A stretch of DNA of 48,640 nt from Octopus bimaculoides (lineage: Eukaryota): positions 125,351,123-125,399,762 of the forward strand of contig NC_068984.1 in the NCBI RefSeq assembly GCF_001194135.2, read 5' to 3'. Numbering within the stretch: position 1 is the first letter of the stretch; every line of letters begins with the position of its first letter. Positions 5,411 to 48,494 of this stretch are shown here, piece by piece. Made by a program: the position numbers and the translations under genes. The notes under the pieces are model-generated. The model did no database searches and was not told the origin of the DNA. It saw only the letters and a list, made by a program, of their open reading frames with translations.

Positions 5411-6196
5411 TTACTGCTGCAATAGAATATTTTTCACAGATTCCAGAATCTATAGAGTATCGAACAAATGGCATAGCAGGTAGAGTATTCTATAAGTTGC
5501 AGGGCAGTAATAAAAATCAAACAAACTGAAAAATTGGTAGAAAATCGAATTTAATAACGTCCTTATATATCGTGCCTTATCGTTTATTTATCTACCTACC
5601 CTAATACTTTTCGTAGAAATAACTGTAACTTATGTGCGAGTAGGTGTGTCTCTCTGTATTTGTGTGTCTGCCTGCATTTCTCGATATATATAATAAATAA
5701 TATATATTATTGCTGTTATTATTGGGGATTTTTTTATGTCTCAAAAAAAAAAAAAAATAGTACCTATATAAAAAAAAATATAACACAAGCTTGGTAAGAT
5801 AGCAACAGAATACTGAAGGGAAGTACAATCAATCAAACGGACTGTACTATCCTTCTAAAATTTCCGACTTGGGTCTAGTCTAGTAATCAATGTTATAGCA
5901 GGCCTGTGGCGTATTTTGTTGAAGATGAAAAACTATAGAAGATAAATGGAGATCATCTGATGTTGCTTAAGACGATAATTGTGGTGAATACATGACATTA
6001 AAACACAACGATTTCGTGTCATTTCATAAACACATAAAGCTTTCGATCTATCCAAATGTTTGCCAATAGTTCATTTCGTTTTCATACAATAATTTCTTGA
6101 GCACTATATCTGATATTCATGACAATGATGAGGATGATGATGATGATGAATATGGTTTGATTATTTTTACAAATTTTTTAATGTTTTTATTTGTAG

Positions 6197-6405
6197 AAAT
6201 TCACGAATGTGCCAACTGCGGTTCTGGAGACAATGTGATATGGCAGAGTGACACTAGGCACTTCTTGTGCAGGCCATGCACAGCAAGCAATGCAGCCCAC
6301 GCAGCCAGTACCAGTCACACTCTGGAAAAACCCTCGTCAATGTCAAGGTCATCAGTGATGAACCAATCGTCTTCTGGGAGATCAGTGAACCAGAACAATT
6401 TCACG
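6197..6405 (+). CDS. GATA456: GATA exon encoding a degenerate N-terminal zinc finger and a Ser-rich linker
   Basis: ttgtag|AAATTCAC acceptor and ACG|gtaagc donor. Translation (E)IHECANCGSGDNVIWQSDTRHFLCRPC...NNFT. The phase-0 end joins in frame to 19229. Confidence 0.8.
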
Positions 6406-6444
6406 GTAAGCCATAGTTCTTTAAATAGTAATAACAATAATTAC

Positions 6445-6477
<33 letters not shown>

Positions 6478-6879
6478 TAATTCGTTTTATTGGCCACAAG
6501 GTCTAATATCAATTAAAAACATCTAAGGACAAAGACAGGACGAAGGTTACAAAAGGTTTTGTCCGAAAAGGTAGGAAAGTTCGTCTAAACAGAGGAAGAA
6601 ATCGGAGAAAGATATAATAAATAAATAAGTAAATAGATAAATAAATAAATAGAACTCCCAAAGGGGGAGGCGCTTCGAAAAAGGAAAGGTTACACGTGGA
6701 AAAACCCATAAAACCACGGGAGCCTGGTCAGAAAAAATAAGAAAGGGGTATAGAGCCCTTTCTCCTTTTACATTACCCTTTTTTTTTCTTTTTTTTTTCT
6801 ACAAGTGTATTCTCAGAATTGGTCCGTTTATACTGGCCATTCTTCCAACAATCACCCATCGTTCAACGAATTTGCTATG

Positions 6880-22011: not shown

Positions 22012-22331
22012 AATCTAAGACCTCAAGCAGTAGTATTTCAAGATGCTCCGTTCAGAACCCGACTGTGCTAGCAGCCTTACAGGGGAACCACCAAAATAGT
22101 TCCCCCATGCATCATTCCTTCATACACCAATCACCAACCAACTCTGCTAATATAATCACTAATAACAGTACGATTCAAAGTCTGCGAAGCAATCAGGAGT
22201 TCGTTTACCCGCTGCTATCACCCCAGCGCCATCAACAGTCTCCATTATCATCAGCACAGCAACATCAGCAGCAGCAGCAACAACAACAACAGCAGCAACA
22301 ACACTCCCCGCAGGAACAGCAGCGGCAACAA

Positions 22332-22366
<35 letters not shown>

Positions 22367-22772
22367 AGGACAGCACCACACTCTTAGTTCGAACCATCCA
22401 CAGCGCCAACAACAGCAACATCATCAACAACAACAGCAACAGCAGCCACCGCAACAACAACAACAACAACAACAGCACCACCATCAGCATCACCACCAAC
22501 AGCAGCAACATCATCAACAGCAGCAACAACAGCAACAGCAGCAGCAACAATCACAGCACATAATGCTTGATTCTTTGATTTATAATCCAGCTCCCCCAAG
22601 AGCTATACCCGTGCACAGCGATAATGCAGCGGTAGGGACATCATCAGGTGGACTGCATGATATATCCCGTCATTCTAATGCTACAATATTACAACCATTT
22701 GATATGATGCAGCTAAAATCAATGAACATCAGAATTTACCAAGAAGACAAAAAAGATTCTCCAAGACAGTAG
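22012..22772 (+). CDS. GATA456: GATA terminal exon encoding a polyQ/His-rich C-terminal region
   Basis: ttttccag|AATCT acceptor in phase 1, in frame with ORF 22065..22772 and ending at TAG; mixed CAG/CAA runs. Confidence 0.88.
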
Positions 22773-27841: not shown

Positions 27842-29053
27842 TATTATGTTGTCAAGAAAGTTCTTGCGATTTTTAACCTTTACATTCAGATGCACATATC
27901 TCGGCTCAAACAAAACTTTATCAATCGAAATAAACACCATCAGAATCAACACACTTTTGCCAATGCAAACAAGTTTATTTATGACAGTAGCGTAAAAACC
28001 CTACGTTCTGGTGGCGATGAAGACGTTGAAGGCGTTTTTGCCATCGTCTTGTTTTTTGAAGCATTTCTCACGCACGAAGTTGCCGAGGTGCTTGAAAAAG
28101 TAGTAGTCGGTAGGCGACAGGTCTGGTGAGTATGGCGGATGAGGCAGAGTTTTGTAGCCCAATTCGTTCAACTTCTGCAGGGTCAGTTGTGCGACGTGCG
28201 GCCGAGCGTTGTCGTNNNNNNNNNNNNNNNNNNNNNNNNNNNNNNNNNNNNNNNNNNNNNNNNNNNNNNNNNNNNNNNNNNNNNNNNNNNNNNNNNNNNN
28301 NNNNNNNNNNNNNNNNNNNNNNNNNNNNNNNNNNNNNNNNNNNNNNNNNNNNNNNNNNNNNNNNNNNNNNNNNNNNNNNNNNNNNNNNNNNNNNNNNNNN
28401 NNNNNNNNNNNNNNNNNNNNNNNNNNNNNNNNNNNNNNNNNNNNNNNNNNNNNNNNNNNNNNNNNNNNNNNNNNNNNNNNNNNNNNNNNNNNNNNNNNNN
28501 NNNNNNNNNNNNNNNNNNNNNNNNNNNNNNNNNNNNNNNNNNNNNNNNNNNNNNNNNNNNNNNNNNNNNNNNNNNNNNNNNNNNNNNNNNNNNNNNNNNN
28601 NNNNNNNNNNNNNNNNNNNNNNNNNNNNNNNNNNNNNNNNNNNNNNAAGACGACACTTCAAAACGGCGTTTTTTATTTTTCTTTTTGGTTATCGTTCAAT
28701 TCGTGCGGCATCCATTTCTCAAGTATTTTTGCTTTTCCAATCTCTTTCAACTGGTTGGAAATTGTCGTATATGTTACGTTTAATTCAGAAGCAAGATCTC
28801 GAAAAGTTGTGCATGGATTGGCTTCGACTAAGGCTCTTAGCTGATCGTTGTCAACATCCGATGGCCGACCACTACGCTTATCATCTTCAAGACTCTCGCC
28901 ACCGTTGCGAAATTTCTTGAACCACCATTCTACTGTACGTTCATTTGTGGTTCCTGGGCCAAACGCATCGTTGATATCGTGAGCTGTTTCAGCAACTTTT
29001 CGGCCTAGCTTGAACTGGAATAAGAAGATTGTGCGAATTTGCTTTTTGTCCAT
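27842..29053 (-). mobile_element. Decayed mariner transposon (D,D34D), interrupted by an assembly gap
   Basis: N-terminus MDKKQIRTIFLFQFKLG...RTVEWWFKKFR...EDDKRSGRP...KWMPHEL from 29053. C-terminus DNARPH...HPPYSPDLSPTDY has exactly 34 residues between the two Asp. In-frame stop and frameshifts are present; a TIR-like end tattatgttgtcaagaaagttcttgcgattttt lies at about 27842. Confidence 0.92.
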
Positions 29054-33118: not shown

Positions 33119-34128
33119 TTAGTTCAGATTAATTGTAGATAGAGTTTCCAAAGATGATGCTTTTGACTGCTTCCGGATCATATATTCCATCGTTTGCATT
33201 CTCACAGCTTCTGTAGAGTTTTTCGTTGGTTGAAATATGATGATTCTCAGTTTGGGAATCAACATGAACACCAGCACAACTAGAGTATGAAGCTGGGCAG
33301 CTATACATATATAAGAAGAACATACGCCGTGGTTGGGTTCGTTAGCAACACCTACTGACACCAAAACCCATATTAGGAACAGTATAAATAATGTGAAATT
33401 AATTTGTCTTGCTTCGTTAAAGTTTTCCGGGAGTTTCCGTACGCGATACGCTTTGTAAATACTGCCAAGTATAAGAATTGTAAACCAAACGAAAGCTACG
33501 GCGTGTTGGTGGTACCAAGCTAGAGAACATCCAAGTGATACAGATGTGTCTTGAACAGTATAGAAATCCACGGTTGGTTGATGAAAATATGTTGATGCTG
33601 CTAATGAACCACAAATAATTAATTCGATTACCAAAAAGCATAATATCTGCAATCGATCTCGTTTACGTTTTTCTAAATGAAGATTATCAATTGTGGTCGG
33701 TTTAGCGTTGAAGATGCAAAGTATTCGATCCGTTTTAAAATATATAACTAGCACGGATGAAGACATAACAAAGGATAAATAATTTGGTTGCAACATACAG
33801 CGTGTATGAGTTGGCCGACCAATATAGACATATGGGGAAAATATAGAAAGGATCAAAGATACGAATAAGACATATGTCAGCTCCCGATTAGATCCTTTAA
33901 CAATGTGACTGTGGCGGTATTTCACAAAGAATGATAATACTATTAATGTGAACAGGAGACAGCTGCTTGAGAAAAGAAGACTGCCGACAGCGAAATGTCC
34001 GTTCCAAGAAAGGAAATCTTGCGGAAGCTCTTCACAGGACGTGTAATTCTTGTTACTTCCCCATCCTGTTCCGAAACGTTCTGTACAGTTCAGACAAGAC
34101 GCCATATTGTAGGCATTTGTAAATTGCC
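33119..34128 (-). CDS. Class C GPCR exon 8 (end of CRD, 7TM domain, C-tail)
   Basis: cttag|GG acceptor. Class C 7TM motifs VKGSNRELTY, KTDRILCIF, RKLPENFNEARQINF and PKLRIIIFQPTKNS; TAA stop at 33119. Confidence 0.96.
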
Positions 34129-34868: not shown

Positions 34869-34985
34869 CTTTACCACAGGGGACGCATGTCCAGCATTCC
34901 TTGTCCGATGCTAAAGCTAAGCGTGTCCCAGGTGGGCAGGGCTGGTCACAACGAGATATCACTACATCAGCTTCACCTTTCCATA
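34869..34985 (-). CDS. Class C GPCR exon 7 (cysteine-rich domain)
   Basis: ttttgtag| acceptor; (V)WKGEADVVISRCDQPCPPGTRLALASDKECWTCVPCGK(G); donor |gtactg, with an alternative in-frame donor |gtaaag 6 nt upstream. Confidence 0.9.
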
Positions 34986-35274
34986 CTACAAAATGAAGAA
35001 AATCCTTAAATTAATGGATATTATACGTGTACATGCACACACACAAATACATATGTATTCATACACACACACACACACACACACGTGTGTATATGTGGAT
35101 ACGGTAAACTCACACGCACACATATATAAATATATATACTAGCTTACCTGTGTCATAAAAAATGACAAGGTTTTCAAAGAAATAATCTTAAACTATCTGA
35201 TAAAGACATCGACATGACATACATTGCATGTATTTCATATGGACTTATATAGGAAGTAGAAGAAAAACAAGAGG

Positions 35275-35356
<82 letters not shown>

Positions 35357-35853
35357 GTGTGTGTGTGTGTTTACGTGTGTGTGTGTATGTTTACGCGTGT
35401 GTGTGTGTTTACGCGTTGTGTGTGTTTACGCGTGTGTGTTTACGTATGTGTGTGTGTGTGCGCGCCTTTTCTCATATTTTCTCCTATTCTATCGTCCCCT
35501 TTTAGCTTGAAACATACCATGTGACCACAAACTTAGGATTACATGAAGGCACCAGACGTGTTATAAAATGGAGTCGTTTTCGTCGCATGAAACCCTTAGC
35601 AGCTCATAAAAATAAATATCTAGAGATATGGAGATAATATGGAGATAGCCATCACACAGTAATTGCGAACAGTTAGTTCCCCATGAGAAGATGAGATAAT
35701 TTCACGAACAAAAATCACTCCAAATGTCACCTGCCTTAAAAAAACGCGCTTATTGTGGACACGCATTTCTCCCACATTTAGTATCATCAGCACGACAGTA
35801 ACTTAGAGTGGCCTCTGTATATACAAACGCACACACATTTATATATATATAAA

Positions 35854-36110
35854 TACAAAGTTGGCCAAAAGTCACTCGACAGTAAATTAAAATTCCATAA
35901 ATACTTAATAATCAATTTTATTTATTCATTCCAATTATGAATGTTTAATAATTGAATGCTTTGAGTTAAAATCACCGTTTTTTTTTGTTTTTTTTTTTTC
36001 AAACATTTGTCTATTTATTAGCGAAGTCTCATATAAAATAATTTTTTTTCTTTAATCTTGGAATTAAATGGTCTTGATTTACTGTCATGTAAGTTTTGGC
36101 CAACCCTATA
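35854..36110. mobile_element. Tc1/mariner-type MITE
   Basis: Imperfect TIRs of about 30 bp: ta-caaagttggccaaaagtcactcgacagtaaat versus (reverse complement) ta-tagggttggccaaaacttacatgacagtaaat, with TA flanks. Confidence 0.65.
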
Positions 36111-36440
36111 NNNNNNNNNNTATATATATATATATATATACAAACTTTGGAAGCGTCGAATGTGGTTGGTATTTTACAGACAAGAAAGTAAATTTCGAAC
36201 GCAGTAAGGCTGTAAGACAACAGTGAAAGACCGAGTATTTTTCGTGATAAGACGTAAGAAAGTTGCCAACAAGTGACTGCAGGATGGCACTGTTTCGACT
36301 GCTGGCAACTTTTTGCGTCTTATAAGGGTATATATATATATATATAAGTAGGCAGGCGTGTGTGTGTGTGTGTATGTATGTGTGCATGAGAGAAAGAGGA
36401 TAAATTTAGAACTGTATTTATATTTTACGAAATTTCTTAC

Positions 36441-37098
36441 CGATATCGTTCTGGTCCATAACTAAATATGAACAATTCCAATGTCCAACTTTTCTGTAGA
36501 ACAAATGGCCGTCTTCTTTCTTTTGTATATTGAACAAGGAGAATGCTCCAGAAATATCTCCAAATTCGTTAAACTCAATAAAGCCGGACTGACCATCAAA
36601 TTTTGTTTGTTTTATCATTTCAAATATTTCTTTGTTCGAAATAAACCTCTTCAGACAGGAACCGTTGCTGCACAGTAATTTATGTAACGCATGCGCAATA
36701 ACATATACTGCGTCCAATACGAACGGTACTTTCTTCAACATTAGGTAATCGAACAATTCCCCTGATTTTCCACTCGACTGCAAATTACGAAAGCATGCTT
36801 CTTGAAAATTGCGGTGACCTATTTGAGGTATCTCATCATGTATCCAATTCGTTTCGTTTTGTTGAGTAATATTGGAACAAATGTGCTTAATAATGAGATA
36901 TTCTTGAAACCAAGTATCTAACTCTGTGACGTCTTTTAAAGACAGGCTTTCCAAATATGATTGATAATCGGTTGGAGTTTCGGAATAAGGACGCAACCCC
37001 AGAGTGCCTTCAATAATACTGACATCAAGATTCAAAATTCTTTTATTTAATGTCCAACTTTCTGATGCGAAATATGTGATGTCCGAAAAATTGAATTC
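36441..37098 (-). CDS. Class C GPCR exon 6 (VFT)
   Basis: tttcag| acceptor; EFNFSDITYFASESW...KVPFVLDAVYVIAHALHKLLC...FDGQSGFIEFNEFGD...KVGHW; G|gtaaga donor. Confidence 0.93.
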
Positions 37099-37716
37099 CT
37101 GAAATATCTACGTGGAAGAAAAACAAAAAAAAAACAGCATAATCATTATCGGCTTTTATATAAACAAATACTTATCTGTACACTTTAGAGAAAATGGAAA
37201 TTTCAAGCAAATTTTTTCACCAAAGAGTATTTATGCCACAATTAAAACAAACAGAAATAGTATCGTACTAGGAAGTTGTTTAACCATAAAGAGAAAAATG
37301 AATCACATACATTTTAATATGTTCGGGCGTCTAAAGAGTCGAGCTAGCAGAATGGTTAACTTGCTGGGCAAACACTTAGCGGCATTTCGTTCATTGTTTT
37401 TCCCAGTTGGCTTTAAACGCCAGATCGATTCCAGCCTTAATTGAATATATTGGCGAAAAATTCCGACTATGATCAACTTGTTTTATACTTCCCTTGATTG
37501 TCTTCATAATTTTTTAATTAATAGACTTCTTAATCAACTAATCAGCTGGTCGAATCATATAAACTCATTATCTTCAGGCAAGGCACAATAGAAACAAAAC
37601 AAATAAGATTCAAAGAATATCGTTAAGAAAATGACAAACGAAAGAAAAATAATTAGTTATTTTAAAAAAGTGATTCGGAGAGAATAAATTATGAGAATAA
37701 ATCTTTTTAATGTTAC

Positions 37717-37907
37717 CTTTAGCAGACGGTAGACTTCGTGTGGTGACGCAAAGATGATAAAGACCTTGCTCTTTGACACTATAGGATTACTGTTGATATA
37801 TGCCATAATATCTTCAGCAACCTGCGGCGCGGAACTGTAACTGAATGTTTTTTTCATAGCAATTTTGATATCCACTTTAGCAGCCTCATATTCCAGCAAA
37901 GCTAAAC
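37717..37907 (-). CDS. Class C GPCR exon 5 (VFT)
   Basis: ttgtag| acceptor; (G)LALLEYEAAKVDIKIAMKKTF...SKVFIIFASPHEVYRLLK; |gtaaca donor. Confidence 0.9.
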
Positions 37908-41498: not shown

Positions 41499-41608
41499 CG
41501 AGACGTCCGTAATTGGTGTCACTACCAAGTAAGGATACATATGTCCAGTTCAGATGTAGAAGGACGTCAATCATTGCTTTCACTTGGACCCAGTCGCTAG
41601 GTACTAAC
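41499..41608 (-). CDS. Class C GPCR exon 4 (VFT)
   Basis: ctccag| acceptor; (R)LVPSDWVQVKAMIDVLLHLNWTYVSLLGSDTNYGRL(G); |gtaagt donor. Missed by the ORF track. Confidence 0.93.
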
Positions 41609-45424: not shown

Positions 45425-45720
45425 CTGAAGAACGAAGTAAACTCTGTTTTATCACTGAGAACTTGACTCGATGCAGAATAACTAATCTGAGGTAGCAGAA
45501 CTGTGCTAAAGATGGTTGAAGTTACCAACGATTGGTCAGAGTTTGCTGGTCCAACAACGGCAATAACTGACTGTTCTGACATCTTAAACTGCTGGGCGGT
45601 GTCTGCATGGTTGCTGGTGTTCGGCGAAGATTTGTAGGATTTGTCTGGCGTCACTGGATAATATGGGACTCTTCCAGGTCTTGACAGAAAATCAAAGGCG
45701 GCTTCAACTCCTCGGATTAA
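45425..45720 (-). CDS. Class C GPCR exon 3 (VFT)
   Basis: LIRGVEAAFDFL...VIAVVGPANSDQS...LPQISYSASSQVLSDKTEFTSFFR; 296 nt, phase 0 to 2; |gtgagt donor. Confidence 0.93.
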
Positions 45721-46902: not shown

Positions 46903-47009
46903 TGTGTTACAGTCATCCCGGATATCGTAACCAATAGTGATGTTAGGGAGCAATGAGCTGTTGGAAATTTTATTGATGATGTACAACATGGCTTCTGCTG
47001 CTGCGAATC
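46903..47009 (-). CDS. Class C GPCR exon 2 (VFT)
   Basis: (G)FAAAEAMLYIINKISNSSLLPNITIGYDIRDDCNT matches the EAM...LLPNITLG..IRDTC motif; aag| acceptor and |gtgagt donor. Confidence 0.92.
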
Positions 47010-48283: not shown

Positions 48284-48494
48284 CAACGTCGTTGAAGCTG
48301 TAACAGTGGGAGTAGTTTCGGTAAGAAGACTGCGCATGAAGCGAGAATATTCCTCCAATGACATAGTCACCTGGCTTATATAGTGAGTTCGAGGTGAGCC
48401 TGATCTTTGGTGTGATTGTCAGCTCCGGGAGATACTGGGTAGTCGTCGTCATGATGAAGACGGCAAGAGATATAATACCTCTGTAGCTAACCAT
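48284..48494 (-). CDS. Class C GPCR exon 1: signal peptide and start of VFT
   Basis: MVSYRGIISLAVFIMTTT...PGDYVIGGIFSLH...HCYSFNDV; G|gtgaga donor. An in-frame upstream ATG at 48530 is an alternative start. Confidence 0.88.

Follow-up and report, generated by a model that had tools for sequence, protein, structure and literature searches.

A CaSR-like orphan class C receptor of octopus with lysine and glutamate in place of the two cysteines that join the Venus flytrap to the cysteine-rich domain

To our knowledge, the disulfide between lobe 2 of the Venus flytrap (VFT) domain and the cysteine-rich domain (CRD) is regarded as universal and mechanically essential in those G protein-coupled receptors (GPCRs) of class C that bear a CRD. 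In the calcium-sensing receptor CaSR, this bond is formed by C236 and C561 and fixes the orientation of ligand-binding lobe 2 (LB2) relative to the cysteine-rich (CR) domain (PMC4977154). The equivalent bond in metabotropic glutamate receptors (mGluRs) is described as critical for ligand-induced signalling in a passage of PMC9553119 that cites Rondard 2006 and Muto 2007. The gene described here is located in a stretch of 48,640 nucleotides from Octopus bimaculoides (NC_068984.1, positions 125,351,123 to 125,399,762; this whole stretch is called the window in the following). It encodes a receptor with VFT, CRD and seven-transmembrane (7TM) domains in which both cysteines of the interdomain disulfide are replaced, one by lysine and the other by glutamate.

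The lysine (Lys256, codon AAA) stands within the motif VDIKIA of the VFT and the glutamate (Glu557, codon GAA) within the motif SDKECW of the CRD, with both codons exactly where the original prediction, made from the letters of the window, had placed them (Table 1). In phmmer alignments against the PDB, K256 falls on CaSR C236 (‘vdikia’ vs ‘rdiCid’), and the first cysteine of the CaSR motif ‘tCCfeC’ has no cysteine opposite it in the octopus protein. The alignment of 79 diverse full-length representatives of 50%-identity clusters, generated with MAFFT, confirms that both residues occupy cysteine columns, as each of the two columns holds cysteine in 79/79 relatives. E557 is aligned without gaps, the CRD loop having the same length in several of these relatives. 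Hence, eight of the nine canonical CRD cysteines are present, with Glu557 in the column of CaSR C561, and the canonical lobe-2 cysteine of the VFT-CRD disulfide is replaced by Lys256. The changes from Cys to Lys and from Cys to Glu require three nucleotide substitutions each, starting from TGY, and the same two residues occur in the independently assembled protein of O. sinensis; for both reasons, a sequencing or base-calling error can be dismissed. There is little doubt that both cysteines have really been lost as a pair and that the gene is functional. The searchable literature yielded no description of a class C receptor from a cephalopod without this disulfide.

The remaining cysteine framework is largely intact. 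As claimed originally, the other eight CRD cysteines (540, 544, 558, 561, 564, 578, 581 and 598) and the three VFT pairs (C64-C104, C382-C410 and C451-C456) were all found in the alignment, and the literature cited above likewise agrees with the role that had been assigned to the two missing positions. Also kept is the pair between transmembrane helix 3 and extracellular loop 2 (TM3-ECL2), C677/C767, both columns of which are 100% Cys in the 79 relatives. A further deviation concerns the lobe-1 dimer loop. Here, F151 occupies the column of CaSR C131, which is 84% Cys in the same alignment, and residues 118-155 contain no cysteine at all, which sets the protein apart from disulfide-tethered homodimers. 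Both classic linking disulfides, the inter-protomer one and the VFT-CRD one, are thus gone. An additional, lineage-specific cysteine, Cys517 (HWNCSYL), lies towards the VFT's end; its column holds Cys in only 1% of relatives, and both O. sinensis and a third octopod retain it. With Cys517, the number of extracellular cysteines becomes odd (15), and this residue may either be free or provide a new inter-protomer link.

The receptor gene consists of eight exons on the minus strand, all introns being of the GT-AG type, with an open coding sequence of 2709 nt that specifies 902 amino acids plus a stop codon. All three domains pass the Pfam thresholds: the VFT as ANF_receptor (PF01094; 3.6e-59; 201 bits, cut-off 25.4; residues 75-501), the CRD as NCD3G (PF07562; 8e-11; 42.1 bits, cut-off 38.9) and the 7TM domain as 7tm_3 (PF00003; 1.5e-39, residues 606-859). 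Together with the TM3-ECL2 pair and the motif KLPENFNEA in intracellular loop 3, these matches assign the product to class C. It is a CaSR-like orphan class C GPCR of coleoid cephalopods with the full VFT, CRD and 7TM architecture. The GenBank protein of O. bimaculoides (P0002) is 99% identical to the reconstructed product. As an annotation, this GenBank model lacks exon 1, departs from the last exon at ‘NSTEA’ and runs into a mariner/Mos1-type transposon, making it a chimera.

Several lines of evidence bear on the integrity of the gene. Isoform X1 of O. sinensis likewise comprises 902 amino acids, is 94.9% identical and carries the same DIKIA and KECW motifs. The 46 differences between the two Octopus proteins are evenly distributed over the domains and leave K256 and E557 unchanged. 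For a third octopod (Logan SRR11869385), the comparison was based on two Logan contigs covering exons 6 and 8, one of which (L003) ends 230 nt short of exon 5. It gave a dS of 0.255, a dN of 0.048 and a dN/dS of 0.19, with individual dN/dS values of 0.22 for exon 6 (vs contig L003) and 0.17 for exon 8 (vs contig L002). Additionally, 55 of the 64 columns with at least 85% conservation in the family are kept by the octopus protein. Two of the nine deviating columns are the lost cysteines, and most of the others show conservative exchanges (S/N, S/T, Y/F). On this evidence, the gene is under purifying selection and is not a pseudogene. Two non-conservative exchanges were noted separately: H641 (33905-33907) stands in intracellular loop 1 where Pro is 87% conserved, and D724 (33656-33658) stands in the 7TM region where Gln is 91% conserved.

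The 10-N assembly gap at 36111-36120 is located 320 nt into the 1455-nt intron 6, in a (TA)n tract. The junction of exons 6 and 7 is in phase 1, splitting the codon of Val528 as G|TA, and is colinear with both XP_029657989 (902 aa) and CaSR, with zero residues missing. As the gap is intronic and the junction both in frame and colinear, it has no bearing on the finding, and an exon hidden in the gap was ruled out by the same colinearity with CaSR and the O. sinensis protein. As regards splicing of this region, two further O. sinensis isoforms are annotated in RefSeq (altered proteins P0271 and P0001). In isoform X3, the 117-nt CRD exon 7 (the equivalent of 34869-34985) is skipped in frame, and in isoform X2 16 residues including C578 and C581 are gone (start of exon 8, 34081-34128).

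The age of the loss can be bracketed by comparison with the cuttlefish Sepia pharaonis. Its locus L001 contains a CRD exon with intron phases identical to those of octopus exon 7, reading VWKGGKLLTSRCSDDCRPGYRKLFGSDNDCWTCVRCEKG. In this exon, the cysteine is absent as well and Asp is found where Octopus has Glu (SDNDCW), the preceding S-D being kept. The last exon of the Sepia gene is intact and 43% identical to that of octopus, the CRD exon lying ~9.4 kb upstream of it. Upstream of the CRD exon, locus L001 extends for just 145 nt, which leaves the exon with the K256 column outside it. Since Sepia carries Asp and no Cys, the loss, or at any rate its CRD half, is older than the split between octopus and cuttlefish (octopods and decapods), and the CRD site has stayed acidic. 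The nearest non-cephalopod relatives, the nemertean Tubulanus and the chiton Liolophura as well as Logan transcripts, have C and CC at the two sites in all cases, and the cephalopod state is for this reason taken as derived.

How rare the loss is was assessed by an exhaustive phmmer search of 1.84 billion representative sequences. Among the best 150 matches, relatives outside Octopus reach at most 34% identity, except for a cluster of 7TM fragments at 43% which includes a Sepia pharaonis ‘CASR’ fragment; no cephalopod VFT is among these 150. Word-index searches for a decapodiform VFT orthologue used three queries, namely the full protein, residues 207-609 and the CRD plus 7TM half from Sepia; all they brought up were Octopus-like fragments and the 7TM cluster of Sepia. 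Among ~105 homologous stretches spanning both columns, both cysteines are missing only in the two Octopus proteins, which represent one lineage. A second lineage without both cysteines, represented by protein P0254, has its two columns in separate aligned stretches. Four further candidates (P0121, P0126, P0248 and P0258) were rejected as alignment shifts with the cysteine a few residues off. Likewise, P0172 and P0228 were not counted as the same loss, for the altered cysteine is apparently the second of the CC pair and the VFT cysteine is kept in both.

A mechanism by which such a receptor could work may be proposed from the positions of the two new residues. Closure of the VFT would still be passed via the CRD to the 7TM domain, now over a purely non-covalent LB2-CRD interface. 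At the position of the former S-S bond, the side chains of K256 and E557 would most likely form an ion pair or a hydrogen bond, which is geometrically likely because the two residues hold the backbone positions of the former disulfide. This contact would lie inside a charge-complementary patch formed by a basic lobe-2 strand and an acidic CRD loop of the type S-D-x-[E/D]-C-W. What the ion pair would provide is specificity and orientation; the mechanical strength of the former bond would not be regained. On the lobe-2 side, the basic residues are K252, K256, K260 and K261; on the CRD side, the acidic residues are D555 and E557 (D and D in Sepia). The same loop is uncharged in relatives that keep the disulfide (SATCC, SVPCC, SVTCC, SSKCC). 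At the two columns, the charges are K/E in the two Octopus species, and the CRD column, as the side available from Sepia, is D there. For two random sites in the extracellular domain (ECD), the chance expectation of opposite charges is ~0.018. An AlphaFold2 model of the ECD (pLDDT 71, pTM 0.71; pLDDT ~85 for the K256 strand and 66-83 for the CRD) superposes with Foldseek on the ECD chains of CaSR and mGluRs over VFT and CRD at a TM-score of ~0.69, and thus predicts a canonical ECD fold. As to the ligand, pairwise alignment shows that the positions of CaSR S147, S170, Y218 and E297 are kept as Ser (GPANS), Ser (SASS), Tyr238 and Glu (ASESW), by which an amino-acid-type ligand is likely.

The original prediction had interpreted the two replacements as a compensatory salt bridge. 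While its column placement, cysteine framework and disulfide role stood up to the analysis, the compensatory bridge itself emerges as only plausible, being consistent with the opposite charges, the K/E pair in two Octopus species and the Asp of Sepia. For the proposed mechanism as a whole, we see about an even chance of being right. That K256 and E557 in particular make a functionally relevant ion pair, as suggested by analogy to the disulfide they replace, is a tentative claim to which we give somewhat less than even odds.

Against this mechanism, a number of points have to be set. The closeness of K256 and E557 is derived by homology from the geometry of the disulfide, and the Foldseek superpositions, with root-mean-square deviations of 5.5-8 Å, are too coarse for placing side chains. 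A lone solvent-exposed ion pair would be no mechanical substitute for a covalent bond in cephalopod body fluid of ~0.5 M salt. With regard to conservation, two Octopus species at 95% identity provide little information on co-variation, and that E/D is retained from Octopus to Sepia carries little weight, because 16/34 aligned non-Cys positions of exon 7 are identical anyway. Once one cysteine is gone, loss of the other would also be expected in any case, as an unpaired extracellular cysteine is deleterious. Finally, the protein P0254, encoded by an intact open reading frame (ORF) of 842 amino acids (L004 1001-3529, Logan SRR16156424), has Val and Tyr in place of the two cysteines. It represents an independent paired loss and shows that charge pairing is not the sole outcome.

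Next in likelihood to the proposed mechanism is a paired loss without specific compensation. One cysteine would have been lost, its orphaned partner purged as a harmful free thiol and both places filled by hydrophilic surface residues, with the match of Lys and Glu being coincidental; coupling would then run via the remaining LB2-CRD contacts or simply be looser. The independent Val/Tyr pair of P0254 fits this scenario, as does the residue beside E557, which is K in Octopus and N in Sepia. Moreover, opposite charges occur at ~2% of site pairs by chance and the K/E pair was noticed post hoc. On the other hand, the CRD site is acidic on both sides of the octopus-cuttlefish split and has a neighbouring Asp, whereas relatives that keep the disulfide are uncharged there, and K256 and E557 are invariant between two Octopus species with 46 other differences. 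We regard this explanation as possible but rather doubtful. A much lower probability is assigned to an artefact or a decaying pseudogene, such as would follow from faulty assembly over the N gap, wrong joining of an exon or a relaxation of constraint. It might be suspected from the 12 N gaps and many microsatellites of the window as well as from the chimeric GenBank model, but the gap is intronic, the splice sites are canonical and the ORF is unbroken, the same residues are found in the independent O. sinensis assembly at three nucleotide changes per substitution, and both the dN/dS of 0.19 and the intact CRD and 7TM exons of Sepia are at odds with decay. This possibility is essentially refuted.

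Two further explanations would give the receptor a different mode of action. Instead of pairing with K256, the acidic residues D555 and E557 (D and D in Sepia) might bind Ca2+ or Mg2+ together with D254, elaborating the Ca2+ site 4 of CaSR, and the coupling, within or between protomers, would be metal-dependent. In CaSR, site 4 is made up of the carboxylate of D234 and the carbonyls of E231 and G557 and connects LB2 with the CR domain when the receptor is active (PMC4977154). It lies directly beside the disulfide that is lost here and joins the same two domains, D254 is aligned to D234, and two acidic CRD-loop residues are common to Octopus and Sepia. The argument is one of position only, however, the CaSR site is inter-protomer and of low occupancy (PMC4977154), and K256 and K556 in the same patch would compete with the cation, which makes such a bridge improbable. 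The charged surroundings of the former disulfide are in themselves a feature of the protein, with acidic residues at D254 and in D555-K556-E557 (34897-34905; Sepia L001 218-232) near the position corresponding to CaSR site 4. As for the other explanation, the absence of the interdomain disulfide and, additionally, of the dimer-loop cysteine (F151 in a column of 84% Cys) would suit a non-signalling, accessory subunit whose own VFT is mechanically uncoupled from its 7TM domain and which depends for its function on heterodimerisation with a conventional class C receptor. Heterodimeric class C receptors do exist in the form of GABAB and the T1Rs. T1R3 retains the disulfide, though, and GABAB is without any CRD, so that we know of no precedent tying heterodimerisation to the loss of this bond. 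That the residues for amino-acid binding and the loop motif for G-protein coupling, KLPENFNEA, are kept also speaks against an accessory role, which we consider very improbable.

Returning to the proposed non-covalent coupling, its most far-reaching version would hold that all extracellular covalent links, inter-protomer as well as VFT-CRD, have been replaced by electrostatics, i.e., by the K256-E557 pair and possibly an additional divalent-cation site made up of D254, D555 and E557. This version is unlikely. If true, however, ionic strength, pH, Ca2+/Mg2+ or redox-independent mechanisms could serve to tune transmission, and the receptor would be a naturally occurring exception to the rule by which activation in class C depends on the disulfide.

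Table 1 Exons of the receptor gene and assembly gap in intron 6 (positions refer to the window)
Feature	Position	Strand	Content
Exon 1	48284-48494	-	Start codon, signal peptide, beginning of VFT lobe 1, C64; colinear with O. sinensis XP_029657989 (P0270)
Exon 2	46903-47009	-	VFT lobe 1; C104 as partner of C64
Exon 3	45425-45720	-	VFT lobe 1, Cys-free dimer loop, F151 (45586-45588)
Exon 4	41499-41608	-	Crossover from lobe 1 to lobe 2; Y238 aligned to CaSR Y218
Exon 5	37717-37907	-	VFT lobe 2 strand VDIKIA; Lys256 (37864-37866), D254 (37870-37872) aligned to CaSR D234
Exon 6	36441-37107	-	Remaining VFT; pairs C382-C410 and C451-C456; lineage-specific C517 (36472-36474)
Exon 7	34869-34985	-	First half of CRD with C540, C544, C558, C561, C564; Glu557 (34897-34899), D555 (34903-34905)
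Exon 8	33119-34128	-	Second half of CRD (C578, C581, C598), 7TM, C677/C767, KLPENFNEA, short C-tail, stop
10-N assembly gap	36111-36120		Non-coding, inside intron 6 (34986-36440), (TA)n flanks

The window as a whole is eukaryotic and AT-rich, with the microsatellites and N gaps mentioned above. Besides the receptor gene, it contains a mariner/Mos1-type transposase remnant at 28673-29053 (-), recognized by an HTH_48 match of 7.7e-17; this is the transposon into which the C-terminus of the GenBank model runs. Upstream of the receptor gene, two long ORFs are found on the plus strand at 6097-6480 and 22065-22772. One of them combines a zinc-finger-like CX2C-X16-CX2C motif with a poly-Asn tail, and the other is poly-Gln-rich; neither ORF gave a significant Pfam match. 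Both may belong, as exons, to a transcription-factor-like gene of low complexity.

Long without the disulfide and yet, as its substitution pattern indicates, under purifying selection, the receptor offers a natural experiment on non-covalent rigid-body transmission from the VFT to the 7TM domain. For a structural requirement supposed to be universal, it provides a clean counter-example from nature, though it is one orphan gene with an inferred mechanism. It directly suggests a set of mutants, i.e., K/E to C/C, charge swap and Ala. As a fast-evolving cephalopod receptor that is probably amino-acid sensing, judged from its binding-site residues, it is at the same time a candidate chemosensor.

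Among the described receptors, CaSR (e.g., PDB 7dd5 and 5k5s) ranks first in sequence (3e-97 over residues 39-890) as well as in fold, at the TM-score given above. With CaSR, the octopus protein shares the VFT-CRD-7TM plan, the positions of S147, S170, Y218, E297 and D234, eight of nine CRD cysteines and the TM3-ECL2 disulfide. It differs in lacking C236, C561 and C129/C131, in having the extra Cys517 and in its short C-tail. The identity to CaSR is no more than 24-30% and mGluRs score nearly as high, which does not support orthology to CaSR. mGlu2, mGlu3 and mGlu5 display the same domain plan with E-values from 1e-87 (mGlu2) to 1e-84. In contrast to mGluRs, the octopus protein is naturally without the lobe-2-CRD disulfide and has Ser (S190) in the column of the conserved agonist-binding Thr. 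On sequence grounds, it is neither a CaSR nor an mGluR orthologue, and the GenBank name ‘metabotropic glutamate receptor 2’ is a similarity label which is misleading and not a statement of orthology. Closer to it are ‘CaSR-like’ orphans of other lophotrochozoans. The nearest full-length proteins outside cephalopods are those of the nemertean Tubulanus polymorphus (XP_074659487), with 34% identity overall, and of the chiton Liolophura sinensis (XP_064597568), whose cluster reaches 36% in the 7TM region. These orphans keep both cysteines (NICVA/ATCCW and KICLA/SKCCW), some of them with the same CRD loop length as the octopus protein. P0254, finally, has lost the same disulfide and has an intact VFT-CRD-7TM ORF, but is only distantly related and carries a hydrophobic Val/Tyr pair where the octopus receptor carries Lys and Glu.

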